DNA from: Auanema rhodensis
Taxonomy: Eukaryota; Animalia; Nematoda
Direction: 5' to 3'
DNA length: 64,000 bases
NCBI GenBank assembly: GCA_964057225.1
Contig: OZ059894.1
Coordinates: forward strand, 16,864,001-16,928,000
Position numbers and translations under genes: made by a program. The notes beneath the pieces are model-generated. The model was given only the letters and a program-made list of their open reading frames with translations. It was not told the DNA's origin and did no database searches. This document shows, piece after piece, positions 19,262 through 64,000 of the stretch (position 1 is its first letter; each line of letters begins with the position of its first letter).

Positions 19262-19300
19262 ATGACGATGATGATGATGATGTTAATGATGATGATGATG
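19262..19300. repeat. Imperfect (GAT)n trinucleotide repeat
   Basis: atgacgatgatgatgatgatgttaatgatgatgatgatg. Confidence 0.8.
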
Positions 19301-21912
19301 AAGGTCATCTTTCATTGTAGAACTAAGACGTTTTATAAACATCAAACTTCATTCAGTTGAGCCAAATACTCGTTAATGCTACCCTTAAATCCGTTTGCTT
19401 TTTATTTATAATATAAGTTTATTATTATATATTTATAGTTTTTTTTCTCAATATTATTATCCATAAATGTGAAAATCTCTTTTGCTCTTTTTACTGTTTC
19501 ATTTTAATATTTCTTATCAATTTTCAGCTACGTATTATACATCATTTTAATCATTATTTAATTAGTCATCTTTTAATTTTATACGTCATTATTCCGCAAT
19601 TTGATTTTAATGTTATGATTTTATCAATTTTTATTTTTTATTTTCAAAGATTAAGCTTAAACTGTTTTTTTTTGCTTTTTTCTTTTCATGTACATGCATG
19701 TATATACATATATGTTTTTATAAATTCAAATAAAGATTTTAGTTAAAGATATCTAAATCTTTTAAGAAACGTCTATCATTATAATTATCTATGATTATTC
19801 TCTTTTTCTCATATTAAATTCTATATATGCATGTATGTATATGTATACGTATATCTTCAGTTTTCTCTTATTCTCGCATTCTACCACCTTTATCACTCTA
19901 TCTTGCTATCTGTACCCACCCTTTCCTTCCGAAATCAAACTGTTCATGTTACTCTTCTCTGATAAGATTCGACTGAACTGTATTGTGATTTTCGACTTTG
20001 ACATTGATTTTCATTCAACTTTCCGGAGATGCAATCTCCGTTCAAGAAACATGCATTCATTTGTCAGAAACACGTTCTTTTTCAAGCTTTTATCCTCTAA
20101 TTACTTTATTTTCTCTGTATTTTGGATAAAATGTAAGAGAAAATTTAGGTTTTCATGACACATGTTTCTTTCACAGATTAGATTACAAATACGGAAAGAT
20201 TTGTTAGTAACGCTTCATCTATTGATTATTTTCTTCCAAATAATTTTTATTAGTAGTTAAACAGAAATATTAAAGATATCATATAACAATTTTATATTTA
20301 TATTTATTTTTATTTTGTACGAAATCTATTATATAAATCCATTATAATGTTCGAAAATTTTACTATTTGCATGAGAGTTTTAGCAATTATGTGTTGAAAA
20401 CGTCTTGATCACCACTCTAAATCCTTTTTCATTTCATCTTCTTTCTCACAAAGTGAGTACAAACTCAACTATTTCTTAATTATATATGTAAATTGATGAT
20501 AGAATGCTTGCAAAATCTATGAAATCGTCGGCTTTTACTTCTGTTTCTTTTCAGCACATACTTTGCATAATGAAGTTGATTAACACGAGATTAATTGCTC
20601 TCTCGCATTTACTTCTTCACTATTAACTAATTTTAAATCTTACATTGTTTCATTCATTTCAAGTATTTAGAGACAGAATAATCTAAATGAACTCATTAAT
20701 GACGTGAGAATTTTCATTTTTATTGACAAACAGTGCACAAAACGTTTTTATTTTCATCTTTATTCTTATTGAAACATGTATTTGTTTGATTTTCACAAAA
20801 TTCAACTCAAAAAGATTTCTAAAAAGGATTGTAGAATCAAATCCATCATTATAATATGAGATGTTGTCGTTCATCATCAACGGTCTTTGATATCAATTTC
20901 CACATCGGCCCTCTTTGTGACATGAAAGGAAAAGGTTTCAGATACGTTAGTAGTATAACTATCTATAACATATATTATAGAAATCTTTAAAGATTATTCG
21001 TATTCTTCTTTGTACTCATATAATCTGTTTGAATGTTTTCTTTTAATTACATTTATCTAGATGATACAATGTTATCTTTCTTCATAAATTCAGATTTCTT
21101 TTATTTGCTATTTCTTTCCTTTTTTTCCGCCAATTTAATTATATATTACACATAGTTTATTTACCTCATCTATTCTCTTTTCATTCTTCTTTTCATTTTT
21201 TATTAACAATTTTTGTTAATTTCTTTTAAATTCTATTGTTTAACACCTGGTCACTGATTTATGCAATAGATCTTCAAATTTTATGAGCAAAACGAAATCT
21301 CTCATATGAAAATCACTATGTCCTTCATAAATCTTCATATATTCTTCTTTATTTCTTTATCTTTTCTTCTTTTATTTCTAACTTACCCTACTCATTATCT
21401 TCAAATAGTTAAACTGTCTATATGTACTGCCTTCAATTTCTTTTACTATACCGCAATTAGTTTACTACTTTTCTCAATATTGTGTGTATTCGGCCTTCAA
21501 ATCAAACAGATCTCATATGAAACCTACATAGACCTATAATTAATTTCCTATTTGAGTTCATTCGAATAAGCATTGTTTTTCAATTTTGTTTATGAATTTT
21601 AACAATTTCTTGTTTTGATTTTCTATGTAAAACTAGATAGAATTTGATAAAATATGCATTTCAGCCATTGTTTATATTGAAAATAGTTCAGTTAATCTTA
21701 AAAAAAAGCTATACCTATCCTTTTTTATCTATATATATAAATCATTTTATATAATTGTAACATTGGCCTTTTTCGTTTTATAAAATGTACTTTTTGAACT
21801 AATAATTATCGTTCATTTAAATATTTATAACTTTATTTCTTATCAATCTACTTTATCTTTATATTTAATGATATATTTTGTATTATTAAGGTACATGAGC
21901 TTTTAAACCAGT

Positions 21913-24221
<2,309 letters not shown>

Positions 24222-29043: not shown

Positions 29044-32000
29044 TTATCGTGCACTCTTGATATGATCAATTGGATAATCACGTTCATGTGGAATCCATGG
29101 ATCACTGTGACGTCTGGATGTTATTGATGATGGTAAACTAAAATGTTGAGGATATACATCAGATGTTTCATCAATTATAGATTCAACACGAGCTGTTGTA
29201 GCTCGACTTTGTGCTGGACTGATAGAGAATACAGAAGATGAATCTGAACATTCTGTGAATTATGAGAGAATGAACTGTGAATATGTTCATTACCTCCACT
29301 TGTATCTTCATATTTTGGAGGAGAAGCTATAGGCTTAAGTGCATCCTCATATCTGGGAGGTATAGGAGATAATGGTGTTGAAGTTAACAAAGATGGATCC
29401 AAAACATATCCTGAAATTAAGAAATATTAATAAATAAAATATAAATATAATCTGATAAAGTTTCAATACAAACTATACGTAACTATTAATTTGTTTTTTT
29501 TATAATAAAAAAAGTACATAAATGGTCATATAAAATATGATTTGATTTGCTTTCTTTATCAATATCAGTTTAAGATCATTTTATTATATTATTTTATTAA
29601 ATTATATGATACATTCAAATAAAATAATATTGACTATCAGATATTTTTTTATATTTTATTAGCTATATTAATAGCATTATTATTATTAATTTTATATATT
29701 AAATTTGGTTTTTTTCATTCTTCATTCCTCTCATATCTTATATTTGATATTAAAACAATAAACACATCTCATTTATGAAACAATCAAGCATTTATAAGTT
29801 CTAAATAAACTTTAAAGTAAAACTTGAAATCTTTTTGTAAACTTTTTTGTTGCTCTATATCATCATCCTCATCGTCAAAATTTTTATAACAAAAGACAAT
29901 CAAATCGTTTGTTTATTCTTTACCATAAACAACAAAGGTCTTGAAAACATGAAAAGAACCCATTAGACAAGTTAATAGAATGACAAAAACCTTTGGCATA
30001 TGTTGTTCATTTACATTTTTTCTTAAATTTCAGTAACTATATACATATATATTCCTTATTATTATAATTATCATAATCTGACTTGAATGACTTTCTTCGA
30101 AAAATTGTATAAACTTGTGTGAAAATCTAATTCAAGCTTCAGCCTTAAATCTTCACATTCTTTCTTTTTTTTTTTAGAAAATGTGACCAACTCTGCATTC
30201 ACTTTTTAGGATTAATTTTAGCTAATATAAACATGTCTATTCTGTAAAACTCATCTGTCTATGCCATTCAACATGTTTTTATGTCAACTTTACCATATAA
30301 TGTCATAAACAAACATGACTATTGGAAGAGAAAGCTGAACAATTTAGGTTTCCTTGAGTATGATATGGACAAAATTTCATTTTGAGCTTTTCTCTAAACA
30401 CAAAATTTCTTCATTTCATATTTCTTTTTAGATTAAATTATTGAAACAATGACAAAATAGGTATAAATACGGATATGAATTGTCCGTAATCCTTATATTT
30501 CTTCTGGTTTTAACGTCTATTTCTAAATAGAATTTATGCCATTCATGTAACCGATCTTTTCGATAATAAATCCGGTTTTTGATCACAACGAATTCTATTC
30601 TTCAGACAAAAGTATTCAAGACTTGAGTATTTTAAACAAGATTTTCTTTTTAAAACAACTTTTGGTTTCGGCCAAGCCATCCTCTAATTTTCTGCAAAAA
30701 TTAGGAAAAAATGTACTTTTTTTTTATCTCAAAGAACATCTCATATATTGATGAGGTGTGTGCACATATATGTATTTTTTTGTATATACCTCACACCTTC
30801 AGCAATCTATCGTTCCCTTTCTCTCTCTTTGTCTCTCTCTCTTTCTCTCCTTCTCTCTCTCTCATCCTCTCTCTTTCCCTTCTTCCGTTTGGTATCTTTG
30901 GCACTCTGAATTGTCCTTTTCATCCTCCTGTAACTTTTCTCTATCACTAATTCTCATTTTGCAAAAGTTTGAATTGGCTATTCATTGAAAATTACTAATC
31001 ACCCTAATATCCAGTTCCTATCTTTATCGTGCCCGTGAACATCTATTACTATCTAAATCATCGAAAAACTACACTAATAGCTGTTTTCGAATTTTTTTGT
31101 CAGGTGAATGATATGAATTTGTCGGCATGATGTCAACTCTAAATGACAATTTACAATCATTTGTTTTTAAATATTTTTGTGAATTAAAGAATTATTTAGA
31201 TATGTATATATACTTTTATAATTACAAATTTCACTTTTAAGCTTCTAAATTATTTTTTGAAACCATTAAAGCTTTCTCCTTCAAGTTGCTCTGCTCTCCC
31301 TCCATAGTTTTTTCTTTTTAAAATAAAAATATTCTTGCGTATTTCATTCATATGTCATCAGCATCTTATTCTGATTGACATTCTGCTTTTGTGTTTTAAC
31401 TCCATTAAACGGGTCATCAATTCGTCTTTTTTATTCATTTTTTCATATAAAATGTATGTATTCATATTATAAAAATAGATTAAAATATGTTTTCCAAATA
31501 AAATATTATTAAAGAAGATTTGATATGAAAAAAAATTAAAAAAGCAAAAGATTCATAGATATATACATATATGTATGTATATAAAACGTCATCAGACACA
31601 AGAAATGTCCTTGAATCCAATTCTCATTCAGCCATTTTTCTTATTTTACTTGACATAACCATCACCTCCAATTTTAAATTTTAGCTCGCATATCTGAGAA
31701 ATGTTTTGAAACAAATTTTATTTGTTATAAATATAATTTAATATAATAATCTCATTAATTTTCTGAAAATCTTGTTAATTCTTAACTTTCGTTTCTTGTT
31801 TTCTTTAAAAATAGATAATTCTTCATTTTATATTCATTGAATCATGAAAATTCACTTCTTTCTTCAGTGATAATGAAAAAATATGTTGAATGAATACTTC
31901 ATGCTGATGTTGGGATTGCTTTTTCCGCTTAACAATACATTGCTCAGCATGTATCGTCTTGTTTGGTCATCAACTTTTTAATCTTTAAAACTTCTCTCAT

Positions 32001-35000
32001 TCTTACAATGACTATACTATGTTAGTGACGACCATGAGATTATTTCTTTGACTGCTCATGAAAAAACTCGAAACGTCTTCAAACAGACAATATGTGCCTT
32101 TTCTTCATTCACTTTTAGTTTTCATTGTTACCTCTCTCTCCCTCTTCCTCTCTCTCTCTCTCTCTTTCTCTTCTTCTTCTTCTTTCTCCCTCTGTCTTGA
32201 ACTGTTTGATATGATCACAATCTAGGAGATTCTTTTTAGCGAGCTTATTGTTCTTGCAAATTACACATTTTGCATTTTCTTCCTATTTCCACTGATGTAC
32301 GGAGATTTGTTTCCAGGAAACGAATATTATCTCGCACGATGGTTCAATCCAGTTCAAATCGGCAATGCCAAATATAACTTTCAATGAAGAAATGCTTCAC
32401 AAAAATCAAGTTTTTTTGATTTAGCAGATGAAAACTATAAAATCTGGGAGTCACGACAACAGAATTTTGTGTATGTGCACGCTTGTTCTCCTTTTAGACT
32501 TCATCCACACTCTTTAGCTGTTTCAACGCACTTTTTCACGTTCTTTCATTCTCTCTTTTCTTCATATTTCCTCTATATATTTCCTCTTTCTCTCTTTTCT
32601 CTCTTACTTTCTTATACTGGTGGTCGTACTTTCTATTAGTTTAGTCATCATACTTTCCAACAAACTGCTTCATTATTTCTTTTTTAGTACGAAAATTTGC
32701 AGAATTTCAATCCACTTCAAGCATATACATGTACATACATCTAGATGTATGCATGTACATACTATATATGCACATTTCATGTATTCCAACAACTCCTCTC
32801 ACTTTAATGACATTAAACGAAATGTGTTTTCACACATTAGTTGACCTCGGTCAGAAGCTTTTCATATTATATATACAGATATATATTAATATAATATAAT
32901 CTTATCTATTTTTGTCTGTCAACTTATACGACGACCTCGATCACTCAAATTTTTTTTATCATTTTGAAGCTTTAATAAACTGATTACGTATAAGTATACT
33001 GAATTTTGTTTTCTGTTTTCATTTGGTTCTTCTTATGAGAAAATCTTTGGAATAGTCAACAATATTTTTGTTAAATTTTGAAGAAATAATGAAGATCTTT
33101 GAGGATATAAAACTTTGAAAAGTTTATTTCATACACTCAAACTTTCATTAATTTAATCTAATATAAGAATATCGTTTTATTTTCTTTTTTTAACGTTATT
33201 AGTTCAAATTGTTATCTCTCAATTGTAAGATAAAATCATTCGTTTTGAAAACTTGCTAAGTAAATTTAATAGTCAACCATTTAATCAACATTCAAAGAAA
33301 AGTTTTAAAGTTTAATCGTTTTACGTTATATGCAATTCTGACACTAAATATGCCACGACCTTATTTCATCTCTTTTTCCCTATTTTTTTGTTATAAAATT
33401 TCTTTCTATTGTCCTTTTTAACCTTTTTTGGCACAAATAGAAAAATATGATCATGAGACCGTATCAATTAGATTATTAACTCTCATTAGAAGCTACTTAT
33501 TGTTGTTCTTTATGCTATCAATATAAGAATTTACGAACATAGACTCGCACTTTTGATATTACTTTCTCTTCTTATATCAATCCAAGAAAACTATAATTTT
33601 TATGATTTTTCCAATATATAAAACTAGAATTAAAAGTCTATGTTTTAATACTTTCACAACATTTTTGAAATCAAATTTAGTTAATCCCTCCTCACTATTG
33701 TCGTCTGTCTCTGTATTTTAATCTCAATCAGCTTGTGTGTTTCTATATTTACAATTACATTCATCTTCTCTATTCTTGTCTACGATATAATTAATGACAT
33801 TTTGCTGCTCATCTGTCCGATATAACACGATGTTGAATAAGAGCAAAGTCTTGTTCAAATGACCATAAGTGAGACATCATTCAAACGCGATGATGCTGAA
33901 TTTGAAGAAGATAATGGTCAATTAATGACCTCGAGACTTCTAATTGTTGTCTCCTATGCGAGCTAGATGAAGATAGATGAACAACTTGAAACTCATTTCA
34001 AGCATCATACCAATACCGTACGATTTTACTCTTTAATGCGATTCCACGCTTTTCAACAGTTTTTCTTGTTGATACAAGGTTGAAGCAGTTCATGCGGAAG
34101 AGCTGATAATTCGTGTTGCAACAGCACTTTATCATGTGTTACCTCTTCCATATATTACTGAACGAACAATAAAAGCATAATGTGCATACGTAACCGATTG
34201 CAGAAACTGCCCATCGAATTTGGTAATTTCTACAAAAGTGTTCTCATTATCTTTACAGACTTTGTATTCTTACATCAAACATATTTAAGTTTTCACCTTT
34301 TTCTAATTTTAAATGAATGATGTAAAAAACGTGACAATTGAACAACACATTTTTTGAACGAATAATGTTATTTAATAACTTTTTCTGAAACATTTTTCAG
34401 TTTATAGTTGTGATATTCTTTATTTTCTTTTAAATTTTAACTCTAAATTTGTACTTTTGTTGAAAACACTTGAAGAATCAAGAGTTCAGTTCAGGAAAAG
34501 ATGATAAAATCAAAGTATTTTCGTCTAGATTGCTCGTGATTACCCATCATTAGAAAAAAATGTCACATGTTACTTTCGGTAACCATATGTATGGCACATT
34601 CAAACATTTATTCATATGCATGCATTCAATTCATGTGTCTTCCCCTCTCATTCTAAAATCTGTGTTATTTGAATTTTTGAAGATAAAAGCCGTTCTAATA
34701 TATTTCAAATAATAAAAATAATAATATATTTTTTATGTATAATTATAGCTGATGAAGCAGTCCAGTCATCGGCCAAATTTGATTGATCAATTACTTGCCC
34801 CCCCCCCCCCCCACTCTCTCTTGTTCTACCCGATAAGCTGCTATTGTGTTGCTAAGGCTCCGATGACCTTCAGCTACAATTTTATTTTGATTTTAACTAA
34901 AATCATTGTAATGCCTTAAGGTTGATCAACAGCATCATAAGATATTCTTCTGTACATCACGTGCCCTCAAGATATGAATGTGTTTCACGTGAAATGGAAA

Positions 35001-38000
35001 ATGCCATTTGTAATTTTCTTTTGACTGTGAATGGTTGCATATTTTCTTTCGGGTTCCATTCTTTCATAACATTCATTCTCTAAGTCTTAATAGTACCAAA
35101 ATTTTTCTATTTGTGAGAATTTCGGATTTATTTTGTCTGAAAATGACATATTAGAATATGTAGAGAATCATTAATTCTCATGAAGTGGCTATTCACTATT
35201 TCACATGGCTATTAGTTCATTTGTCATTATTATAAAAGATAATTGCAATCTGCTCTGTCATATACTTTATTCTCTCATTTTATATATTTCAGTCTTTATT
35301 CGTTTTGAACAAGAGTTTGAGCCAAATCAGAAATGAAACTGAGATTATGAGAAGAAAAGAGATTAAATACATAGCGTAGTAGAATAGATGACCTCGAAGT
35401 GATATCAGAAGGCAGATGTTGGCTATCTTCAGATATACATCTTTCACTCACATGTTCTATTCGTTGTATTCTGCTCTTATCATATCTATTTTTTATTATT
35501 TAAGCTATTGAAGACAAGTCAGGTACACGTGCTTGTAAATGCATACATACGCATATGTGAATGTTTAAATGAAAAACAAATCAACTACCCAAAAAAGTAA
35601 AACGAAAACTCTCCACCATTTCCGTGAAGCTTGGCACTTTGTTATTTCAGTTTTTCTCTCTTCTTGTTACTTTTCTCTATATTTTCTTTGCATTTACCAA
35701 TCGTCACCTCCGGAGTTAGTAAACTCAATTCCGGGTTCTTTTGTTCTTTTCCAAATAAAATGTTCCATTAACTTATTGAGAAGCAAACTCGCACTTTTTT
35801 GTATAAAACTTTTACAGATTATGGTACTGCCTTTTTTAGCTTCTTAACTATGCTTTCTGTATCTCATATTCCTTTTTTTTTCAATTTCTTTTCTTTCCAT
35901 TCAGCTACTTTACACATACTTCTCACGCTATTTTCTTATTCATTCTAACTAGCAGCATGTTTCTAACTCCTATCAGTATTTTTCGCAAGAATATTCGGTA
36001 AAACTTTCTTTATTTATTATCTAATCTTTGTAACAAAACAAAATCTTGATACATTTTCTCTTACATTTCGTAATGACTTCTACAACATTTATTTGGAAAG
36101 CTAGCTTTATGAGGTATTTGGGTAGTGGTGCAAAGAACTGATTCCAATAATAGACTAGTTTGTTCTTCTTTCAATTTCCTCTAGTTTACAAAGTTCAATA
36201 GTACATTTACTATTGAAAAGAAGAAGAATAATGAATAAAAACCAACATAATTGTATTCCTTAAACTTCCAACTCTCTATTCTTTTTAATATTTTCGTTTA
36301 GAAAGTATGAATTTCTCAACAATAATGAACTTTGAAAATATTCTTTGTGTCTTTTCTTTTCCTTCAAATTCAAAAATATGGTCTATGCTGTTTTCATTCT
36401 ATTTTCAACATTATCTTTTCACTTTCTGAATAATTTATCGTAATCTCATTTGCATTGTTTATCAGATGTCTTTTGTTGTTTATAGATTTTCGTTCATTTC
36501 GGACATCAAAAGTAGCTGCTTAATGGTATCACCATTACTATATCTTTCTCTCTTTCTCTCTCTCTTTGTCTCAATTTCTCTCTTAATCCTTTCCAATTTC
36601 TTATTCATTTACTCTCGTTATATCTATTTATTTCCCATGTCAACTAGACTGTCTTCTGATTAAAATGTCAAATAGGCTTAGCTAAAATCAAAACATTCCC
36701 AATTTTCATAAAATATGAATATATTCCTGTGTCCTATTCACTTTTTTTCATAAATGTTTGTAATTGACAAGCAAGTCGTATGTAAGTCTCAAGCTTTCAA
36801 GACTAATTGAAGCTTTCCAGCAGCACAGCAAGGGAAAAAAGAACAATAAAAGAATTTGCAATGAAAATCTTAGATTGAAGTTTCTTGCAGAAGTAACCTT
36901 TTACTTTATTTTCTCCAAAATATGTTAACAAATTTTGATTCTATTTTACAAGTTCCCGCAATTGAAAAGAATCGAAATTGTAATTATTCCATTTGTCATT
37001 CATTTCATGCAGCATCCTCCTATGACATACGTTCTAGAATATTCCCTAATTTCCTTATTAGCCTTGCTCTTCTCTTCTCCCCCCCTCTCCCATCTTGTCC
37101 CAGACAGACCATCTGTTTTCTTTATTTCAATCATCTAACTATTAAGATTTAATGGAAAAGCTATACACACATGTGTATATGTATGTATATATTTAGCATA
37201 GCATTACATACATGCACATATAACAGGCTCTTGTTTCTCTAAATTATAGAAAATTGCAAGAAACATATCATTTTCATTCATTTCTCGTCTTTTTTTTCTT
37301 CGATTATCCTATACTATCCCTACATTTAAATGCATTCTTATAATCAAAAAATCAACTGCAAAAAGCCTCATCTATCCAATTATCTTTAATCTTGGAACGG
37401 ATGTTATGCTTGAAAGCTTATCGTTCCCACTCTCCCCCTTTATAATCGCTTTACAATCCTATTTATTCATCATCTTTCTATATTATTTTCATTTTCAATG
37501 AAATAAATTGCAATTTGTCAATAGATATACATGCATTTACATCTAAATGTTGTATGTTTTCATATCACTGAAGCCCAAATGAAATAGAGAGACAGATTCA
37601 TTGGATATAGTACCTGTTTCCAACTTCCCTTTCATTATAATCCATTATCATTCTTATTATATCTTACACATCAAATTCAATATAAGATACATTTCCTCTT
37701 ACTATTCTCATAACCTTTCCTAATATTCTTTCTCGACAAAACCAAACATTTCTTCTTCCACTTTCTAATTATTTTAGTCTCTCACAATACACATACTTTT
37801 CGCAGATTTTTAGCAATCTATTTGAATCACTTTTTCTATATATTGATGTGGTAGAAAGATATAAGAAGGATTGAAAATCTTTTTGAAGTCAGAGGTGGAA
37901 TACATATCCCCGATGCCTCTGTTTCCTTTTTAAAGTTTCGAAAAGAAAAAGAGGAAGCGGTTTCAAGTCCTATGAACGGTTGACCAATTTCATTCAATTA

Positions 38001-41000
38001 CGATATATTGCGATCATTACTAAACATTTGTAGGAATCAAGCAATCTTTAGAAGTCATTTAATCATCTTTCACTTTCTATACGATTGTCGTTTTTACTTA
38101 AAACCATCAACAACCATTTGCCAGATAAGTTTCACGTAAATAGCACACGATGTTCATTTCACGTACATCTGAAGCTTTGAATGGTTGTGTTTTCTAAGCT
38201 TTCCTTTTATAATCTATTACCGCTACTACTATCGCCATATCTAATCGTTCTGCTCTCATGTTAAGACTTCATATGGCCATTTAATCCAAATCTGCCTGAC
38301 CTGCCAGTATTCTACATATATGAAATTCGTCTTGTCAACTAGTCATTCATCCAATAGCAGTCACTCAACTAAACTCTCAAACGCATGAGTCCTCCCAACA
38401 AAGCCAGTCAACCACTCATCCCCTTCATTCACCCTCAGACGTTTGTAACGAAAAGTTTCTTGCTGTACTCTGTTGTTTCAAGGCGATTCTGCTCAATGTC
38501 TTTAGATACATACATGACAGAGTTGTATAACTTTGATTTTTTTGGAATATTTTACGTTTTTTCTTTGACTCCAATTCAAATTGTGTTTTACAGTATCATT
38601 CATTTTCATTGTGACAAACAATTTTGAAATATCTGTTGTCACAATTGTTTCTTCACAACTAATTTCATTTTAATTTCACAACACTAATCATATAAATTTT
38701 AGAAATTATGTCGTTTCATGACCTTTTCACTAAGTTCATGACCAAAATAGTAGTCTTGACCTATACTTTGTGCCAATGACATCTTTAAATTCATAGTCGT
38801 TGACAATAACTTTATCAGTCTTTATCATTACTTTCCTCCTTCTCTTTTTCTTCAATTCATTAATTTTTTTTTGTTTAAAGATAAGTATTATAGAATGATA
38901 ATTTTAATTTGTTTTCAGGTAATCTAAACATGAAAATTGACTAATATTATTATATAAGATGATGTCTTTTTAGTATTTATTTGGTAAAAAATATATAACA
39001 AAGACACTTGTCATATTTGCTTCAATCTATCTCAAAACCATATACGGGAATGTGTGAGATCAATATATAAATCGTATAATTCAAAGAGAATTAGTGAGAG
39101 AAAGAATGAGAAAAGGTGAGATATATACATATGAGAAGAGAATGTTAGATGAGAGGAACTTATACGTAGTTCCAAAATTTCAAATCAAAAACCTATACTT
39201 TCAGTTATTTGAACAGGTGTGACGTCGTATAACTTCTAACCTACTACCTATATTACTTAATGTAATAAATATACCATATATATAATATTATATATATATA
39301 TATATTGATATAATTTGATTCATATCTTTTTGGAAAATATTTCTATTACTTTTCATATTTAATTATTCATTTAAAACATTAATTATATTTATAATATGTT
39401 CATATAAACAGCTGTTCATACACCGTTCATTTATTTATTTCTAAAAAACGACCAAAAGCTTGATTATTCTCTAGTTAGAATTAAACAAAAAAAGAATCTA
39501 ACTGTCTGGTGTCATGCTAATATCTAAACGTATCATCAATAATCTCATCTTTCTTCCTTCTTTTCTCGTTCTCCCTTCTGATGATCAGCCATATACTTCT
39601 TCTTCATCATCTATTCTTTAGCTAAATGTCCTATAGTGTTATCAAGACCATCCTTTCACACACACACCCTTTACATCCTACAATCTGATCAATGGCAGGC
39701 ATCGGTCATTAGGCCACCAGCAGTGCGGGAATAGCGGGAACCATTTAGCTATTCTCCTTCTTTCTCTCCAAAATGACACTCAAAGAGACATATCAGAGAG
39801 ACACATGCATTATGTGATTGTATTTATTTAATCCTTATTACTATATGATTTGTAGTCTTTAGCTATGCGTAAATTTTCTAATTATATCAAATACATCTAT
39901 AATCATAAATTCATTATATAAAATATATTTTCAAAAAAAAAAAATATTTTACATACTTGAGATATATTTTTTGACAAAAATTATATTTACTTTATATCTT
40001 TATATAAGAATATCTTTATTTATTACTTTATCGAATTACGGCATTTGAGATCTCCGTTACTGGTTCTTTACGTGAACCTTTTCATGCCTTTTTCGAAAAT
40101 GAAAACTATTAATGTATGCATGAGCTGATTCTAGAAATTTTCTTTTAAACAGATCTTTTCTCAATTTTTTACCTCATTCTCACTTTTCTTGTTCTCCTTT
40201 TATGACGATAAACCGGAACTCGGTCAGTCAACAAGTTGAAATGAGAGAATCGCAAAAATTAGAGAAGAAATCAAAAGAATATTTCATGAAAACTGAAAGA
40301 TATATAACATTAGAAAGCTTACAGTATTAACTGCAGATGTAAGAGATGTTAGGTTATGAGAAGACTAGAAGAAGAGAGATGAACGAAAATTTGGATAGCG
40401 AGAAGACAATTAAAACAAAGCTACATATGGTCGTCGTTTACGTTTGTCGGTCGGTTTGAATAATCAAACAGATTTTTCTCTGTTTCACTCAGAACAGTTT
40501 GTCCTTAATATCATAGAAAGAAAAGAGATGAGTGTGAATACAGTCTGTTTGTGTGTGTGTGTGTGTAATGGAGAATAACCGTGCTTAATGTTTTCTCTGC
40601 TCTCAATTCATTTTTCTTCTTTTTTTTTTTCAAATTTCTTCCCTGCTTTTCCACTTACGTAATTTGTATTCAGATGAAATGTAAAAGTTACAAATTTGTA
40701 CCAATTTTTCTCAAAAAAGAATATACGCCTATTCAACAATGCTAAACGAAATTGCAACCGTTCTACATGCCTATAGCATTAAAAATGACTTTTCAGATTT
40801 TTACGAGAAATTAGCATGATTATAGTATGAAAAATATGGCGGGAAATATAAAAAATATGTTATTTGCGGTTTGCTATAGGTTGTCAATATCATGACCCAT
40901 ATAAACATAGTGAATATTATGTGAAAGCTATTCTTTTACTGCCTATTGGCAATTACATATATCTAAACATTTCTATAAATTTTGTTGATAGTTATATATA

Positions 41001-42887
41001 TATATATATAATGTGCATAATTACATATATAAATGTATATATGTATATGTATATTAATTTTTCTTTTTCTATGCTTTCCTTATCAACTATTTTCATTATT
41101 TAAATTAATTCAATAATTGTATCATTTTTGTATTTGATTGTGAAATGTGTTGTTGAACCTTTTATTAGATGTCGTATATACTTCAATGACTTCTCACGCT
41201 TTTTTCTATTCTTTTCTCTTTGTCTTTCAAAACAGTTTGTTTTGTGCTGCTGCTATTGGTGCTGTCCACGAAATGTCCTTTATTGGCTCAATGTATTCTA
41301 ACTATGTTTATTTATCACCACCAAGCTCACTTACATCATCGTCGTTTAATTTTTATTGAAAACTCTCACCAATATCATTTACAAGTTTATAACTATACAG
41401 TGAGTCTATTTTAAAACTTTAAACATATGTATTCAGATGCATGTATATCATTCATTAGTATTCATTATCATCTCAGTTTATTGTTAGCTTCTCACGCGAT
41501 CAATGTTTTTATATTGTAGCTGAAAACTTATTTTCAATATTGTGAAAACGGTGAACTGAACATGTTACTAGGTGCTTAAGTGCATGTTGATGTTCAGTTC
41601 TTTGATTCAAGCCTGCAGGGCAAATGGGAAGTAGATGTCAGAATACAGATATACATGCATATATAGGTGGCTATGTATTGTCGAAATCAACATTCAATTA
41701 ATCAGAAGGCAGCCGAAAAAGGAAATTCATTCAATGTTTCTCTCAATCATTTTCTCTCTCTCTCTTTTACGCTTATTCTTTCTTGTCTTTCTCACAGTGT
41801 CGAAGACGATGACTTCTGTCACCACTCTCGTTGCTGGCGGCAATCGTTCTGTTTTCGCTTTTCACTCTTCATGTCCCTTTCTTCTCTTCTTAACTATATC
41901 CCTAGTCCAGGTTTACCCTCTGCTCCTCCTCTCTTTTCTACACAAGGAGGCGATCTGGCTGTTTTCAAACTAGAATTTTAATTCTTCGTTTGTCACATCT
42001 CTTTTCGAGTTTTCACCAGAAAATTACATCGAAGGCTGAAGCACGAGTATTTGATGCAGAAATCAAAACCTTGGAATGGTGGTTATGTGTCTATGTGTTT
42101 ATGGGTGTTGTTTTCCACCAAAGGATGCTAGATGATACTCCTATTTCGCATCCGTACTTTAACTGAACCAAGAGATCACATCTCATCATTTTTTCATTTC
42201 CAATTTTCTACTTGGACACAACTGTTTACGTCGTCAGAATATTTTTTATTTCCGCCTTCTTCATAATTCTAGGCGATTCGGCTTGTTTAATAGTGAGATT
42301 CTTTATCTATTAAGTCAGTCCGGAGCGTAGATTAGCTACTTTCACCTTCATCTAGCTGTCAAGTTTGCATTTACCTTTTCAAGATTTTTTCCCAATTCAT
42401 TTTATCGTCATCATCGTTTTATTCGATTTCTACCTGTCGTGTCATCAGCTAAATTAGTCATTTAACCATAAAACTTGAAGGTTTACCACTTATTCCTTTC
42501 ATTTCACTGATGTCCTCTCTCGTTTAACTACTTCTGTATCCTATCTTAAGCAATTCATTCTTCTTATTCGGTTTCTTTCTATGCTTTTGTCATCGCAGCT
42601 GGACACTCGGAACTACTTAAGAGTGTTTCTCGAGCTCTTCTTCATCTAATATCTCTTGCTCTCCTACTATATTCACAGTATTACCTTCTATTTCTTCCGC
42701 GTATCGTTCATCTTTCATTTTATTTCTACCTATCTAACAGTCTATTTCTCTTGTTTTCCCTCTCCACATTCAACGATTATTCATCTCATTTTCTGCTCAC
42801 ACCTTGACCTGGTCATCATCAACGTTATCGTCGTTTTCTCCAAAATTTGTGAATACAGCTTTTTACCAATTTTCATATGTAACTTAG

Positions 42888-42929
<42 letters not shown>

Positions 42930-45900
42930 TATTGTATCTTGTTTTCATCTTTCACATTAAAGGACACAATTTTGTTAGAAAAAAGCAGCCTATTTTCTGA
43001 TCAAAAAACAAAATCATCCACACATAGCATAAAGTATTTTTCTGCCATCTCTCATATTTCTTTTACTATCTCTCAGGCTCTCGTCAGTCCATGTATGCAT
43101 GTTATTCCTAACAGAACAGAAACAAGTCGTGTTGCCAATTCAAAAACATTCTTCATAATGCTTACAAGCTGCTTGATACATACTTGATGACTTTAGAGAC
43201 GAGATCTTTACTCTTCGCTAATTCTTCATTTCTATTCGATTGCTTGTTCTCTCTCTCTCTGTGGTCATGTGTAGCTCGACTTTCTTGATCAACTTGACCT
43301 TTGTTTTTACGAGATTGTTCTATTACTATTATAGAGCATGGTTATATATCTATATAATCTATCTGGCATCTAACAACCTGACGAATAAGGAAGAACATCT
43401 GCTATATCTATCCGCCAAACCATAAAACATTTTCATCATATTCATGTTACTTCTTTAATTGAGTCTAATTAGTTTATGTATATAAAAAAAATTTTTTTTT
43501 CTCCAAATGTTTCAGAAAAAGCCAGCTAAATCCTTCACAAAAGGCTCATTCAATAGTAATTTCTGGGAAAAAAAAACCTTCATGAAAGTTGTTTTTGCAT
43601 ATTTCAGTGAATTTACTATTTTTCTGCACTTCTTTGCTTCCTCTCCCTACTAACACTTGTACATTCTCAGATTATCGTATTACAAATGTCTAGATAATCA
43701 TTAATTTCTGCTGAGCAAATTAATGAATATTATAAGCATTTTATTGTAATTCTGTCGTCACTTTGTCTATTCAAAATCACAAACCGACAACAAAGATAAC
43801 TGTGAATTGCCTGTTCCACTGATCATCCAATCCAATAAATCAGCTGGACAGCACGTGTATGTGCCGACCATATGGCCATTCTCTTCCTCTTCCTCTCTAT
43901 TTATCTTCAATATCTCGTGTATAATATGTATATCTTGCCACTTTTGACCTTTTTTTCTCTTGTGCCCTCATCCTAATTCCTATCGTCGTTAATGTCTCTC
44001 AATCAAGTCTCTTATGTTACTTACAAACCATCAGCTCAACTCAACTGACTAACTGTGTCATGCTCCTCCTCCGATCTGAGAGATAGAAAGAGTAACAGAA
44101 ACACAATCACTCAATCTCTCTTTTTCTCTTCCACACTCTTCCATTTTCGCCGACAACGACAAAGAACCACAATCATGAATATACATACATTTCACATAAA
44201 TAAATATATATATATATATATGAAATGTTGTATGTTGAAGGCTTTTTCAAATAACTTCGATTTATGTTTTTTTCTTCTATTTAGTATGTTTGCCCCGCTT
44301 GTTTTTCCATTCCTTCACGGTTCTTCCTTTATTCTATGATCATCTATCTCTACGCTCCAACTAAGTCTGTTCAGTCTCTGTCATTTCTATTCAACTTGTT
44401 TATTCAACTACAACTTTTGCATTCGTTTTTTTTTCAATTTTTGCAGTTAAACTTTGATATTATTAATTAAATTCATTCTTACTTCATTTTGCAACTATTA
44501 CGAAATGCACAATGAATTAAAATTATTTTGTGACTACTAGACAACTCTATATCTCATTTTCTCAATCTATCTCTCTATATTTTTCTCTCTCTTTCTCTGT
44601 GAGAGCTGAAATCCTTTTTGGTTTTTGTCTTCTTGCCCTCCTGTGCGTATCTGGTCTTCCAGTCTTATCTCTCACAACTACGTAACGAGACAATATAATC
44701 TCAGATTACTTGATATAGTATTCTGGTAGCATCGTAAGTTGTTGAGCATTGAGTTTCAAAACATAAATAACAAAAGATAGTTCATCAAGAATACATTTGA
44801 ACAACTCATTTTAATAGAACAAAACTTGTTTTATGACATGTTTTCGTATGTACTATCCCTCAATATATCTGACACTCCTCTTCTTTTTTTTGTCTTTCAC
44901 TCTTTCTCTCTTTTAAAGCCAATATGTTTCTCCATTTTTTGTCTTCTTTCCGTTCATCCGACAAAGCTACAACCATTTGTGTTTGCGAAACATCGAAGAA
45001 ACTTATTCATCAGTTATACTATTGCAGCTCGAAATGGATTAGTATCAACTTCGAGACTAGCTATGCAATGCTAATTTAAACGTTTTTTTTCCAATTTTCC
45101 ATTATGTGTAATGAATTTGTGATCAAGGCATCTAGGAAATAGCCCGACTCATCTTCTTGAAAGGCTTTATTCATGGCAATATTCTGAGCATCTCTAAACA
45201 GAACAGCAAATTCTTTTGAACAGTGAGGTGACAACGGATGCGACCTAGGCTATATCTCGTAAAAATGTCATTTTTTGTGTTTTCCTGCAGACACATGTAG
45301 ATGTTTCCATGTTTTATTCATTCCGCTCTGCCTATCTATATATCTCTTCTTCAATTCTAATTTGCCTGTCTTCTCTTCATATCAAAATGCCTTCGTCTAA
45401 TCTCTCCTCCGTTATTCGTGTTGGCAAAAACCAGACGATTGTAACGAAAAAGACAACGAGGTTAGGCAGTATGCGGATCAACATGGTTAATGACTATATT
45501 AGGCCGATTGTCATCTTCTTCTTCATCATCTCTTCAACAACCTCAGTCTTTCTCTCTTTCTCTCTATTATATCATTCCATTCGTCTCTCTTTGCCACATC
45601 TGTCCCCAACACTCATAGAGATATGAAAAGACTGAAGTATAAAGAGAGATAGAGAGATGGTGAGCTCATTCGCCACCCTCTTCGTTCTCTTTCATTTCCA
45701 ATACTAGCAATTATTTATAGTGAACAGCTTGGTCATTCTCTATGTCTTTTCTCAGATGACAGACTTATAACTCGCGAATCGTCTGCCTGTTTCCGTATTT
45801 GACTAACTTTCCAAATTTAGTAACTCTGCTGCTTATTCAACAATATTCGTTTTCTTTTTCACTAAATAAATTTCTTTTTCACATATGTTTTTGGGTTGCT

Positions 45901-48889
45901 GAATTGCTAATTCTTTTCAACAATTCTCAGACACACTCATAAAATCTTGTCGGAAGATGTCAGTTCAATATCTTGTGAACTGTTTTTCATTTTTTCTTTT
46001 TTCTCTCCGTTTTCTGTACTCATCCTTCATTTTTTGTATCGAAATCTGTTCTATTTGTGTTGTCAATAGAACATCTTGAACTAAACTTTTCTCATTTATT
46101 CATTCCCTTCATCTTCCCATCTCTGTTTCTCTCTCAGTTTCATTCTTAATCTGGCTTTCTCTTTCCTGTATTCCAGTTCAACTTTCACTATTCTTTATAT
46201 CGGTTTATCTGTGTTTTATTTGAAATCTGAGAAGCCAATCGCATGAAAGACTTTGTGCTTCACTTCAGCTAAATGGGTGGCCGTAAGTCATTCTGTTTGG
46301 CATTATGGCATCTTCATCCGTTCCGTTTCTCAGGATTGAATTCTTATTTTGAGTCCAACGGCCTTATGCCTTTGGCAATCGGACAGCTTGAGCATGTTTT
46401 CCATTTTCGGCAATTCGACACCGCCATCATCGCTAGCAACGAGAGTCTGGTTTTCTTTGTGCACAAGACACATCATTCTACTCATCTTTCCCTCTTGAAA
46501 CCATGACCAGAAGCTTGCAATTATATTCAAGTTCATTAACTATAAACATTTTCTAATAACTTTTGAGTATCATTTATTTGAAAAGTTATATAATGACACT
46601 TATTAGATTGCCTTGGCCAGACAACATTCAGAGTTCTGAGCCCAATGGCAAACCTCACGTGATCTTTATCCGTATTTGGACTTTGTTTTTCATTTCCATA
46701 GCCTACCAAAGTGAGTACCTTTTGCTCCCTCTCGTTTTCATTTAATCTATCGTAGACAAAGATACATTTTGAGGCTATTTTGTCGTTTAGATTAGTTCTT
46801 TGTACAGTATTTTGATCTTCTGTAATAAAACAATACCGTTTTATAGGATGACTGAAAAGCATTTATAGTATCTTCTATCCCTTTACAGTTCTCTTTTTCT
46901 CTATGTTCACTTATTGCTTCAGATCTTCCATTCACTGACCCTGTGTTTGCCTTTTTTCTCTTTGGTATGTGCTTTGTGCCATCATACTTATTCGATGGCG
47001 GCTACAACAGGATCTCGGGAACAGCCATCAGCAACGTGCTACGATGCGTCCGGAAACTGTCATTGTCAGCAATAACTGTTTATTATATTTTCTTAAATCT
47101 CACTTATATTTATTCAATTCGAAACTGCTTGCTTAACATTAAGCATGACTCCACAGCCAAACATCAAGCTTCTGTTCAACCGTTTTATGGCCATTTCTCA
47201 CATTTATAATTCCGTTATTCAAGTACCTCCATTCATCTATCTTTCTCTTTTTGCTCTTGTTTTGAATCGGAGAACAACGCTTGAGAAAGCTTCAGCCTTT
47301 GGCTTCATTGCCTCTAATTCGACGGTTTGCAAGCACATACATAGCAGCAACAGCGCCCGACATTTAATTCTTTCATTTCCATTTTCTTTTCCGTTTTTTG
47401 TATTTTTAACAAACGGATGAGCGATGAACTTTCTCCTCATTCTAGTTCATCTTGTCTCTTCATCATCGTCTAACGCAAGCTCTCCCAATCGTTCTCGTTC
47501 ATTTGCTATTACTGATTTATACAGCATATGAGCAAAAGAGATTTCGTCGAAACAGTCAAACAGTTTTCTCTCAATTCTTCCCTTATCTTTCATCTTTTCC
47601 AACTTTTCTCTCATTCTGTGCACTATTTTATTTTTTTATTTTCTGAAATGTATTTTTTCTTTCTTTTGCAGCCTTCATCATAAGTTTGAGTTAATTTTTC
47701 TCGTGAACTCGCTATGTTTTGCAATTTCTTTTCAAAGTAAATTCTGTACTTTTTTTCGAATGCTTAGTCTTTCTAACTGCTTATTGAGACTACTTTTTTT
47801 ATTTTTTCTTCTCTTATACAGCTTTGATAACATGGTTTGAGCATGCTTTTCAGAATAACAATACAAAGATGGCTGCACTTTATAAATCCTTTTATGGATA
47901 TTAAGCTTTTTTAAATTTTGTTTTCTCATTTTTCTGTTTTGTGCAAGAAAAAAAATAATTGAAAGATGAATAGTTAGACATTTTAATCAACTTTAGCACA
48001 AAGAAGAAAAATGATTAAGACATCTGCGTCAACGACGATGTTTGCTTCTTAAACGTCGCTGCTGCCTTTTTCCTCATCTACTTCTTCTTCGTGTTCGTTG
48101 TCGTCATCTTCTTCGTTTCTTTCCTCCTTCTCATCACCATCATCATCATAATCATTGTCATTATTAACGTTGATCATGTAGAAATGACAGCAATGAAGAA
48201 GAGAATGAGGAAAGACAAAACAAAAAAAAACGTTGCAGCTGGCTGTTAGATAAATATTTTGATGTCAATCTATTCGAGCAGTACTCTTCCTTCGACATGA
48301 GCATAAACATCAAGCGTTCGACCTATGATGACTGTTATTTTTCTGTCTAATATACATTGTATTTTCTTATTTTCAATCATCTTCAAATTGTTTTTTGTTC
48401 ACTTCATTTTTATATATATATATATATATATATCTATCTCGTTCTCCTAGTTCTCCTAGTTCCTCTCTCGAAATCATCTACTTGATGTATCTACATTTCA
48501 AGCACTTTTCTCCTTTTATCTCAATGAATATGCCAAAATGGTGAACAATAGATGAACGCATGTATATATCAATCTATGTTATGTGCCTATCTGGGTGTAT
48601 ATGTCATTGTGCCTTCGGGGTTACTTGGTCTAAGGTCGGGTCAAACTACGGACTTAGATATCTGGGATACGCAACTTGCAACTGTTTTTCATGTCAATCT
48701 ATCGGTTTTGTGTCTTCTTATCCCTCTCACCATTATTATCTTACATTATTCTGAACTTATTTTTCTATAGGTAGTTCAGATTACATTGATGTCAATGAGT
48801 TTGGGGCTAAGCACTCGACATGGGAGCTCATATACTTTTGTGCTACATATCGTAACCCTCTCTTTCTCTCTCTCTCGTTCGGCTTGTCT

Positions 48890-48928
<39 letters not shown>

Positions 48929-51334
48929 CTTTTCTCTCTGTTTTTCTATTAATATATCTTTTTATTTTAAATTATATATATTTTTTTCTGATTTTTGTTC
49001 AACTATTTTCGTTCCAAAACTTTCATGCAATGATTCTGCTCAATTTCAATGTTTTTCTCATTGTTCAACGAATTTTTTCTTCCGATTTATCTAATTTTCT
49101 GATTCATTTCAGCACATTTAATCTGCAATGTCGAGCAGCACATACAACTTGCGACCTATACTACTACCTTCACCACCGCACAAAAAAATGGCCATGGTTT
49201 GTGTTTTATTGACATATTTTCTTGATTTTCTCTTTCTTTTTCGAAAGTTTAAATTATTTTTCTGAGCTGAACTCAATGTTTTGCAGGAACCATCTCCAAC
49301 AGAGCTATTCAATAGATCTCCATTACCGTCTATTGAAACTTTACTACCTCAATCACCTCATTCTCCTTCTAACTACTATCAACAAAACGGATATTGCTCC
49401 TTTAATCCCGGAAATGGTAAGTGTTTATCAATGTTCTCTCTCTTTCTAACTTAGTCCATACTATTTTATTTTGTAATTTCAAATATTAAGTATATAAAAC
49501 ACCAAAATTGCTTATATAATTCCGAATAAAACTAATTATATTGTTGATTTCAGGTACTATAACCCCTCTGCATCAGCCATTAACAATAATCACAGATGAA
49601 CGGTTTCTTAACGGCTCTATGTATTATCCACCGCAGTACCCTATCAGCTACTGCAATCAGTTCCAGCCATTGTATTAAAAGACAAAAAAGACAAAAATCT
49701 ATATCATCGTGTAATATCATTCAAGGAAAAAGTTCTTTTTATAGTTAAATATATACATATGTGTTTATATACATATTTTATATATATCCATACATGTATA
49801 TGTTATAAATGACGGGTTTTTACATATTGTGACAAGCTTTAAATGAATAAAGATTATAAATTATATTTTTTCTTTTATTATTAATTTTATTTTGTCTCTC
49901 ATTTCTTCATAGTTTCTCTTTCTCTTCCTCTCTTTCTTCCATTCTCTCTATTATTTGTATTTGAATTACTTTAATTTAGCAACAAAATCAAACATATTCA
50001 ATCATCATGAGAGGCTAAAGAACAATATTAATTTTTCGTTTATGTTCATGTAAAATTTATCAAAATATTTCCGATCGCTGAATTTATAAGGCTGTTCAAA
50101 TATACAGCAAAAAGAAAAACATTTCCAGGTTAGAAATGGAACTATTTCAATCAAATTTCGACGTTTTATTTAAATAGTTTATCTTTTCCATAATTGAATT
50201 TATTCTTTTTTTTTCTAATTTTCTTATATAATATAATATATTTTGAAAATTTTTGAAACAAAAAAAAAAGAAAGCGTACCCATAATCTGAGGACAGTCAT
50301 CATCACCAGGCTGAACTCTCGCAGCTATCATAACGCTGCGAACACGATTATTTTCATCCAAATATAACCTTCTACTTGTATCTAAATTCCTCTATTTATT
50401 TATTTTCCAATATATCCTACTGTTTTTTCATTTTTTTTTTGAAAAAAAAAACTTATTCGAAAGTATTTACGAGAAAAACGAACAATGTTGTGTTGATCCA
50501 ACAAAATATTGAGAATGATAATCTTCTAAGCTATGACGACTTCCCCCACAACCTGTAAAAATATTTTAAATTGTACTCTGTTCTTCATCTTTTTTTCAAA
50601 GTTTTTTTCCTTGAAATCATTGTTTATTTGATCTTTTGTCAATATTGAAAATTGGTATTAAGAAAAATACAATCACTATACTTCAATCAACTCTAAGTAT
50701 GAATAGTGCAAATATTGAAATGAATAGTTTCAAGTGATATATGACTTGAATTCTCTATTTTTTTCAAAAACAAAATGGCTTTTATGAGCTAGTTTTTTCT
50801 TTTCTTTTCTTTTTTTTTTTGAAAAATTGCCCATTTCATGTTTCTGTTTGTCTAATTATACTGATTTGTGTGTTCGAAAAATGCTACAAAGTATTCTCTT
50901 AAAATCTCTTGAGCTTCAAATTAAATGAGACATAACATCAGAATCAGAATATACTATAGTAAAATGGAACAAAAAATTTTTTTTCATATTCTACTAATCA
51001 GAGATTGGAATATGTTATTTTTGATTTCAATTTTGATAATTAATTCAACAAAATATTAAAATATCGTAGAATTGAAACCTTTTGATAATAATAAATCAAC
51101 TGTCTAAATATAATTTGATAGCTATTTTTGATTAAAAACCAGTCAATGAAATAAAGAACTAATAAAGTTAAATATGAAAAGAGGAGGAACATACAAGATG
51201 TGTTTTTTAAAAAATAAAAATAAATTTGTAAAACAAGAAAACTAACCTCGAATTGCAAACCGAATACAACATGACATCACAAGTATCATGACAAAAAGAG
51301 GTGTGAAATATGTTAAAAGATCGTTATCAATCAT
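29044..51334 (-). CDS. Single-pass membrane protein with two PPxY motifs (194 aa; 5 exons; ~20.9 kb intron 3)
   Basis: Exons 51334-51247, 50552-50484, 50381-50280, 29410-29294 and 29252-29044, all joined by phase-1 GT-AG introns, give MIDNDLLTYFTPLFVMILVMSCCIRFAIRGCGGSRHSLEDY...DCPQIMGYVLDPSLLTSTPLSPIPPRYEDALKPIASPPKYEDTSGECSDSSSVF...HIKSAR*. The architecture is a TM segment, CC, then PPRY and PPKY. The individual exons are well supported; the long junction is inferred. Confidence 0.65.
34798..34812. repeat. C15 homopolymer (G15 on the minus strand; G-quadruplex-capable)
   Basis: 15 consecutive C in otherwise AT-rich DNA. Confidence 0.9.
42896..42926. repeat. (AT)n microsatellite
   Basis: Uninterrupted atatat run. 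Confidence 0.9.
48896..48926. repeat. (CT)n microsatellite ~200 bp upstream of the nested gene's acceptor
   Basis: Uninterrupted ctctct run. Confidence 0.9.
49128..49678 (+). CDS. Small Pro/Ser/Tyr-rich protein (107 aa), nested antisense within the intron of the PPxY membrane-protein gene
   Basis: Exons 49128-49196, 49287-49416 and 49554-49678 give MSSSTYNLRPILLPSPPHKKMAM/EPSPTELFNRSPLPSIETLLPQSPHSPSNYYQQNGYCSFNPGN/GTITPLHQPLTIITDERFLNGSMYYPPQYPISYCNQFQPLY*. Supporting signals: ATTTCAG acceptor 15 nt before the ATG, TTTTGCAG and ATTTCAG acceptors, a GTAAGT donor, and AATAAA at 49846-49851. Confidence 0.75.
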
Positions 51335-57686: not shown

Positions 57687-58364
57687 ATGTTATTTGGTTT
57701 TTTCTTTCTTATCTCAACTGCCTATTGTTTAGAATGCTATGGCAAACAACCAGAAGTATCACATTATGGTTATACTTTTCAACATTTTTCTTTATAAATC
57801 TTTTCATAAAATATATTTTAGCTGCTGTTTATGTTAAAAACGACGATGTAAATTATGTAGCTGAAGTTTCATCTGATGCTGAAGATGGAACAGCTGAAGG
57901 CTTAATGTTAACAACATCTGATGACAATTGTCCTTTGTCTTGTGTTTATCAGATTAGAAGCTATTCATCTGATCATGGCGGTATGATTTTATAATTCCAT
58001 AGTAGTCTCCATTCAAAATTATTTTAAAGGTTCTATTCTTCATGTGAGAGAACCAAATCCCTCATTTGTACCTCCTGGTTATCTGCTTATACACTCACCC
58101 CAGTTCTTGTGTGCTCGAGAAGCTGGATTTTGCGGAGCGTACATTCCACTTTTCCGACATTATCGTGTAGAATCTGGAAAAATATGTAAGAAATCAATTA
58201 TTTGAAACAAATAATTATAATTGATTTTAGATCATATCTATTCAATGAATTATACTGTTTATTCAAATTATACAAGAGAATCAGCTATATGCTATGTTTG
58301 GCCAGCTACACCTACTGAGAATGGTAGTAAAACAATTACTCCTGTTGAAAGACCAATAGGATAA
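57687..58364 (+). CDS. Small secreted protein, DUF5648-like repeat
   Basis: Signal peptide MLFGFFFLISTAYC; four exons in frame. C-terminal CAREAGFCGAYIPLFRHYR...HIYS...YTRESAICYVW resembles the CG.tvPLYR..H.Y...gY..E.i.cYvW repeat. The family assignment is from motif recall. Confidence 0.7.
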
Positions 58365-58962
58365 AAAAAAACTAAAAAATATATTTTATTTTGTTTTAAA
58401 CTATAAATAAATATATTTAAATAAAGTTATATTATAGTATAATAATAAGAATAATAATATTCGTTTAAATCTTTCATTTCTTCCATCCAAATGCTTTTTG
58501 TGAAATTGAGAAGAATTCATTTTCTGAATAACAACATTCTCATATATCATAGTTCTGAGGATAACGAGTTGAATGTTTTTCTCAACAATTGACTAAGTTT
58601 GGCATGAAGTACCCGTTCGAGTTAATATACTTTCCGCACTTAATCTATTAAAAGCCTAAATACGTTAGTAATGCTGGAAACACTAAAAGTATTTCGAACT
58701 TGTCATTTTCAGTGCATTTGCTCACAATGAAAAACTATAGAAATAAACTGAGAAGAAATGTTGTTTGCATCTCAAGTTCAACTTTTGCAACTTCAACTTT
58801 AAAATTGAACTTGAAATCATATTATAAACGCATCTGTTAAGAAATAATTAGAATTGATTTTCTTGTAATATAAGATGTAGAAATGAAAGAAACAGTATAA
58901 GCTTAGAAGAATGAGTAGGTGGTAGGAACATGAATATTCAGACATTGCAATTGGTTGTATAT

Positions 58963-58964
<2 letters not shown>

Positions 58965-59008
<44 letters not shown>
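58965..59008. repeat. (TA)n microsatellite in the gcy promoter region
   Basis: About 22 TA units. Confidence 0.9.
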
Positions 59009-59012
<4 letters not shown>

Positions 59013-59136
59013 TAATAGTCAAATATACATATATAACAATATAAAATAAAGATAATATCTTATATAATCTTATAATAAACTATGAATTAATGATATTTAT
59101 TAAGATTATAAGAATTCATATTGTCTACAAAATGGA

Positions 59137-59170
59137 TTTTAAGGTTTCCAGATCAACATCTAAAGGTTTC
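59137..59170 (-). promoter_or_regulatory. Pair of candidate ASE (CHE-1) motifs, GAAACC, 22 bp apart
   Basis: GGTTTC at 59143-59148 and 59165-59170, reading GAAACCTTAAAA and GAAACCTTTAGA on the minus strand, within 60 bp of the gcy ATG. Confidence 0.5.
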
Positions 59171-59202
59171 ACATAACACAGTACCCTAAGGCATTGTTAA
59201 AA

Positions 59203-63972: not shown

Positions 63973-64000
63973 TAGAAGGATAAGTAATTGAAGTTGTATG

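Follow-up and report, generated by a model that had tools for sequence, protein, structure and literature searches.

A candidate PY-motif membrane adaptor gene of the nematode Auanema rhodense and the opposite-strand gene inside its putative 21-kb intron

A locus on chromosome 1 of the nematode Auanema rhodense raises the question of whether two groups of short minus-strand exons, about 21 kb apart and with a complete plus-strand gene between them, are the two ends of a single gene or belong to two. The locus lies within a window of 64,000 nucleotides (nt; C1:16,864,001-16,928,000), the whole stretch of DNA analysed here, which is AT-rich, with a guanine-plus-cytosine (GC) content of 24-35%; positions refer to this window unless prefixed with C1. 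A preliminary description of this DNA proposed that five minus-strand exons, here termed E1 to E5, form a host gene whose third intron encloses the nested plus-strand gene. All five exons were found on that strand where it had placed them, and the coordinates and length that it reported for intron 3 (Table 1) likewise hold. Joined, E1-E5 would encode a small single-pass membrane protein with paired PY motifs, and the features of the translated exons support an adaptor-like makeup, that of a membrane protein which would recruit WW-domain ligases through its PY motifs. The probability that E1-E5 constitute one gene spanning the ~21-kb intron is put at about one in two.

Codon usage proved powerless for recognizing short exons at this locus, as log-odds trained on 30 long open reading frames (ORFs) place even the verified exons of the nested gene at null. 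Because codon usage cannot separate those exons from null, GC contrast against equal-sized flanks, expressed as a percentile, was adopted as the exon test; a strict short-intron pattern scan yielded too few sites for use. By GC contrast, E1, E2 and E3 look like exons, with values at the 97.4th, 96.6th and 99.6th percentiles, in the same range as those of the verified nested exons (99.0, 95.3 and 99.8). For E2, the underlying GC content is 0.366, compared with 0.225 and 0.237 in the flanking introns. By codon usage, E1 and E2 do not depart from null. E1 (88 nt) is a well-formed predicted start: no ATG was found in the 250 nt upstream, its donor is the best of the set (8/9 consensus positions matched), and its putative helix attains a maximum 19-residue hydropathy of 2.21. 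Acidic residues precede this helix, and basic residues and cysteines follow it, an arrangement expected to place the tail in the cytosol.

Exactly at the donor of E3 the GC content drops from 0.482 to 0.143, a step of a size encountered at 0.33% of positions, and the codon score falls from z = 2.6 in the exon to z = -1.4 in its 17-codon read-through extension. On the GC step and the codon score, a read-through end of E3 with a nearby AATAAA was rejected, and the step together with the noncoding read-through implies that E3 is an internal exon, which must splice onward. The earlier claims of a phase-1 E3 donor reached without a stop codon and of a phase-1 acceptor at E4 were both borne out.

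The 3' group is marked by its motifs, which were counted in a six-frame translation of 264 kb comprising and surrounding the window. PPxY followed by two acidic residues (PPxY[DE][DE]) occurs twice in this translation, both times inside E4 and 13 residues apart, and plain PPxY occurs 25 times. The paired PPxY-acidic motifs of E4 are not a product of chance, and E4 is genuine coding sequence. GC contrast reaches the 95.3th percentile in E4 and the 94.2th in E5. Both exons are single copy, a six-frame search of the genome with the two of them having matched themselves only. Neither contains an in-frame ATG, so that an upstream coding exon is required.

Pairing E3 with E4 is economical because it would settle two orphan halves without additional exons. 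The join is frame-compatible, from phase 1 to phase 1. On the minus strand past the E3 donor, nine TTTCAG sites occur in 21 kb, that of E4 being the ninth. Among acceptors in these 21 kb that match at least 6 of the 7 bases of TTTTCAG, only those of E4 and E5 open a suitable frame, defined as one that is long, in phase 1 and endowed with a positive coding score and raised GC, and E4 is the only convincing candidate partner for E3. The proposed minus-strand gene would run from 51334 to ~28830, with the E3 donor at 50280 spliced across 20.9 kb to E4 at 29410, and this splice would place the E1 helix in the same mRNA as the PY motifs of E4. The exon lengths sum to 543 nt and give a product of 180 amino acids, or 183 with the alternative E5 acceptor at 29252, in place of the 194 residues first reported. 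The interior of the putative intron is unique DNA, matched elsewhere in the genome by CT and TA simple repeats only, and contains no Pfam-bearing ORFs, no tRNA and no Rfam matches. Minus-strand ORFs at 46.3-47.9 kb were set aside, having neither a family nor a paralogue.

The plus-strand gene within this interval, extending from 49113 to ~49870, stands on firmer ground. An annotated protein of Auanema sp. JU1783 (P0002, 107 amino acids) aligns collinearly with its three exons. Identity is 100% between exon 1 and residues 1-23, 81% over exon 2 (the match covering residues 22-70) and 81% between exon 3 and residues 66-107; for local matches that extend across exons 2 and 3 it is 73 and 81%. This exon-for-exon match confirms the gene and its splice pattern, and with them the earlier description of a complete, spliced gene for a 107-amino-acid product with a PPQY. 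P0002 has no Pfam family and is predicted to be disordered in its protein atlas model. The PPQY of the window (49646-49657, plus strand) is replaced by PTQY in P0002, while the flanking residues (MYYP.QYP) are kept; what is conserved is a tyrosine- and proline-rich C-terminus as a whole, not a WW-binding consensus. The earlier suggestion that host and nested products form a PPxY pair acting on the same ligases accordingly loses its footing, given PTQY in the closest orthologue and the 25 chance occurrences of PPxY in 264 kb. The gene is flanked by E3 on one side and, on the other, by both E4 and candidate exon X, the latter an alternative 3' end for E1-E3 considered below.

The translated host exons contain each of the elements previously attributed to them, namely a predicted transmembrane helix, a CC pair, PPRY and PPKY. 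In the proposed product, the N-terminal part, encoded by E1-E3, would comprise a signal-anchor helix with cysteines next to the membrane and a linker of 48 residues, and E4-E5 would provide a disordered cytosolic tail in which an acidic dileucine string (DPSLL) is accompanied by two PPxY-E-D motifs. The canonical [LP]PxY motif required of single-pass PY-motif adaptors is thus present twice, as PPRY and PPKY, each followed by ED. By analogy with PYT-1, Commissureless, NDFIP and PMEPA1, the product would be expected in the plasma membrane or in endosomal membranes, its tail facing the cytosol. The tail, on the same analogy, may dock the WW domains of NEDD4/WWP-type ligases and thereby sort either the product itself or a client membrane protein.

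Several families offer points of comparison for such a product. Commissureless, PRRG4 and NDFIP1/2 are membrane adaptors that use PPxY or LPxY motifs, in many cases with acidic residues directly after them, to bring in NEDD4-family ligases for the sorting of client receptors. Drosophila Commissureless, vertebrate PRRG4 and NDFIP1/2 perform the adaptor role proposed for the host product and are unrelated to it in sequence. PRRG4 has a Gla domain and NDFIP proteins have three C-terminal transmembrane helices, whereas E5 past the PY motifs is hydrophilic and ends in TAA. An N-terminal transmembrane segment followed by two PPxY motifs, as predicted for the joined host product, is found in PMEPA1/LDLRAD4 and WBP1/VOPP1, and the resemblance to these proteins noted earlier holds for this transmembrane-plus-PPxY build. 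It goes no further on the features examined: the Smad-interaction motif PPNR of PMEPA1/LDLRAD4 is absent from the E1-E5 translations, and the Pfam family WBP-1 (PF11669) was not matched by the four host exons scanned, whose shortness limits the power of the search.

The closest known case is Caenorhabditis elegans PYT-1 (C12D8.15), a small, nematode-restricted, single-pass membrane protein whose cytosolic C-terminal PY motifs are needed for endosomal localization and also for retrograde trafficking of the receptor guanylyl cyclase GCY-23 (10.1101/2023.01.22.525070; 10.1101/2025.08.13.670147). The authors of these studies remarked that PY adaptors share little sequence outside their motifs (10.1101/2023.01.22.525070; 10.1101/2025.08.13.670147). 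The likeness of the proposed host product to PYT-1 is one of build and motifs, a single transmembrane segment with a PY tail, the motifs being LPSY, PPEY and VPYY in PYT-1 versus PPRYED and PPKYED in the host product. No counterpart of the proposed 21-kb intron or of the nested gene has been described for pyt-1. Gene nesting and PY adaptors are each familiar phenomena. If the E3-E4 join is real, automated annotation would probably overlook the host gene, and the single-pass PY-motif adaptors of nematodes would gain a second type; a recent demonstration with PYT-1 has assigned this class a role in tuning the trafficking of receptors in a sensory neuron. With the join, the locus would also furnish a clean example of a tiny gene stretched by the regulatory region of another gene lying in its long intron.

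Table 1. Locations and properties of the features discussed in the text (window positions unless prefixed with C1; a slash marks a splice junction)
Feature	Position	Strand	Properties
Host E1	51247-51334	-	ATG start; predicted N-terminal transmembrane helix; CC; basic flank; donor GAG/GTTAGT, phase 1
Host E2	50471-50552	-	82 nt; acceptor TTTTACAG; donor GTAAAT
Host E3	50280-50335	-	56 nt; donor TGG/GTACGC; ends in phase 1, no stop
Proposed intron 3	29411-50279	-	20,869 nt; contains nested gene; putative join
Host E4	29294-29410	-	117 nt; consensus acceptor AATTTCAG/G; phase 1 in and out; DPSLL, PPRYED, PPKYED
Host E5	29044-29243	-	Ends TAA; alternative acceptor at 29252 adds 3 amino acids
AATAAA	28845-28850	-	~195 nt past host stop codon; likely poly(A) signal
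Nested exon 1	49128-49196	+	23 codons; TTTCAG acceptor ends at 49112, 15 nt ahead of ATG
Nested exon 2	49287-49416	+	
Nested exon 3	49554-49678	+	PPQY and TAA; AATAAA at 49846-49851
Candidate proximal first exon	29924-29999	-	ATG; 25 codons; hydrophobic; phase-1 donor ATG/GTAAAG
Candidate terminal exon X	48053-48242	-	Phase-1 compatible; hydrophobic stretch; acidic tail; TAA
Purine/pyrimidine asymmetry domain	29540-50917		(CT)n-rich on plus strand
Similar asymmetric stretches	12000-22000; C1:16,676,000-16,688,000; C1:16,704,000-16,715,000; C1:16,772,000-16,783,000		
GH47 mannosidase	21.9-24.2 kb		
Class-3 lipase	25.7 kb		
Receptor-type guanylyl cyclase	57700-64000	+	HNOBA and cyclase domain matches

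A number of observations weigh against a single gene. Introns of about 21 kb are rare in rhabditid genomes, and the other introns in the window measure ~50-700 nt. The GTACGC donor of E3 is weak, as is its acceptor; eight other TTTCAG sites lie between E3 and E4; RNA pairing between the two ends of the intron was no better than in controls; and the pyrimidine excess of the strand-asymmetric domain described below follows the sense of the nested gene and runs counter to that of the host. In addition, no orthologue of any host exon was found in searches that were run exon by exon, with separate exons as queries. The E4 open frame has no relative among proteins of 46-145 amino acids, and that of E1 none among proteins of 41-129 amino acids (word-indexed searches). 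E5 retrieved no relative and one spurious match from 1.84 billion representative proteins (phmmer), the protein atlas gave no match for E4, and two metagenome scans likewise produced no match. Pfam hmmscan at E values up to 10 assigned no family to four of the five host exons, with limited power, E3 (18 amino acids) being too short. A genome search also showed no other copy of E1 in the genome of A. rhodense itself. Conservation, which had been proposed as a criterion for both reading frames, thus obtains for the nested one, through its 81%-identical JU1783 orthologue, and was not detected for the host exons. Finally, each half of the proposed gene has a candidate partner close at hand. A proximal first exon with a hydropathy of 1.88 lies 513 nt upstream of E4, and the chance of finding such an exon within 0.6 kb is ~9% by a null count over 264 kb; the terminal exon X lies ~2 kb past E3, is phase-1 compatible and ends in TAA.

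These neighbours permit a different division of the locus, which is possible, if tentative: two separate small genes, one consisting of E1-E3 and another end exon, the other of a proximal exon and E4-E5. With the candidate first exon at 29999-29924, the second gene would encode a protein of ~130 amino acids in which a transmembrane segment is followed directly by the PY motifs. With X as the end of the first, the nested gene would still be enclosed, in an intron of only 2 kb. The attraction of this arrangement is that it dispenses with the 21-kb intron, at the price of demanding two extra unverified exons, and the quality of both candidates bears on its standing. The proximal exon is preceded by ATGs at -11, -17 and -47, with no acceptor between those at -11 and -17 and the start ATG; its GC contrast reaches only the 86.8th percentile; and the lysine ahead of its helix suggests a topology in which the PY tail would not be cytosolic. 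It appears to be a weaker start than E1. X has a GC contrast at the 97.3rd percentile, set against a poor acceptor (CTAACAG), an internal T9 run, an acidic part that resembles a decayed GAA/GAT triplet repeat, and its selection as the top scorer among many segments, so that its status as a coding exon is doubtful. The tract at 48052-48168 on the minus strand is three-periodic and D/E-rich (GAT/GAA codons), has a TAA end and lies ~900 nt upstream of the nested ATG; it may represent either a small coding exon or the degenerate remains of a triplet repeat.

The annotation of Auanema sp. JU1783 also speaks to this choice. It includes the nested gene and contains no protein of any length with E5 and none of 46-145 amino acids with E4, although a compact gene of three exons ought more likely to have been called. 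The lack of a compact E4-E5 gene in that annotation mildly favours a gene that predictors missed, as they might one with a 21-kb intron.

A single locus could also be read with alternative 5' ends or with exon skipping, a reading that seems unlikely. E1 would be joined directly to E4, giving a product of 134 amino acids, or the distal start at E1 and the proximal start at 29999 would both be used, yielding proteins with different transmembrane helices. The 88-nt E1 ends in phase 1, which matches the acceptor of E4, its donor is the strong one noted above, and both candidate first exons encode a hydrophobic N-terminus. On the other hand, the strong GC contrast of E2 and E3 suggests that both are probably included, and the two candidate first exons have no visible sequence similarity. 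That E1-E3 are chance open frames, with E4-E5 belonging to a gene whose first exon has gone unrecognised, is very improbable: the null codon-usage scores of E1 and E2, the lack of a homologue (E1 having been searched as above) and the ease with which short exon chains are built in AT-rich DNA would fit it, but all three exons in succession reach at least the 96.6th percentile of GC contrast, GC drops abruptly at the E3 donor, the 250 nt ahead of E1 are free of ATG, and the codon test fails on the verified nested exons as well.

The single gene spanning E1-E5 would have an intron that houses an independent, conserved 107-amino-acid gene on the opposite strand, together with the ~19-kb upstream region of that gene. 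A marked strand asymmetry runs through this interval. Pyrimidines make up 56-62% of the plus strand in most 2-kb windows of the domain, the plus strand contains 38 copies of TCTCTCTC and the minus strand none, and the cumulative curve of pyrimidines minus purines has its minimum at 29540 and its maximum at 50917, near the E4 acceptor and E1, respectively. The nested ATG is preceded by a TTTCAG acceptor and a (CT)n tract. The domain is most simply assigned to the DNA upstream of the nested gene and does not discriminate for or against the host model. Similar domains of 8-12 kb in unique DNA occur elsewhere in the 264 kb, each with an ORF or gene of the same sense at its 3' end (Table 1), and candidate causes of the asymmetry include a long outron or 5' intron, oriented regulatory DNA and mutational bias. 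The idea that a sense-strand excess of pyrimidines upstream marks gene starts in general was rejected, the mean being 0.508 upstream versus 0.497 downstream across 52 ORF clusters.

The asymmetric domain might be transcribed or organized in the sense of the nested gene. Its near coincidence with the host interval (29540-50917 versus 29411-51246) could then be taken to mean that expression of the host and of the nested gene are mutually exclusive through transcriptional interference, and the adaptor might serve the guanylyl cyclase encoded 6 kb upstream, as PYT-1 serves GCY-23; this is a far-fetched combination. The co-regulation or mutual interference raised in the preliminary description gained no support from anything tested. 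The receptor guanylyl cyclase gene does lie ~6 kb upstream of E1, and the adjacency may be a coincidence.

The neighbouring genes in the window are compact and include the mannosidase and lipase genes listed in Table 1. Two further observations concern the DNA ahead of the window. The string PPPYPPPYPPPY stands in an open frame on the plus strand at C1:16,863,393-16,863,428, ~600 nt before the window start; apart from E4, it is the one place in these 264 kb where several PPxY motifs stand together, and it may mark another PY-rich gene. Farther upstream, the plus strand at C1:16,810,366-16,822,748 has a frame that stays open without a break for 4,128 codons; this frame contains internal repeats and is accompanied by long antisense frames.

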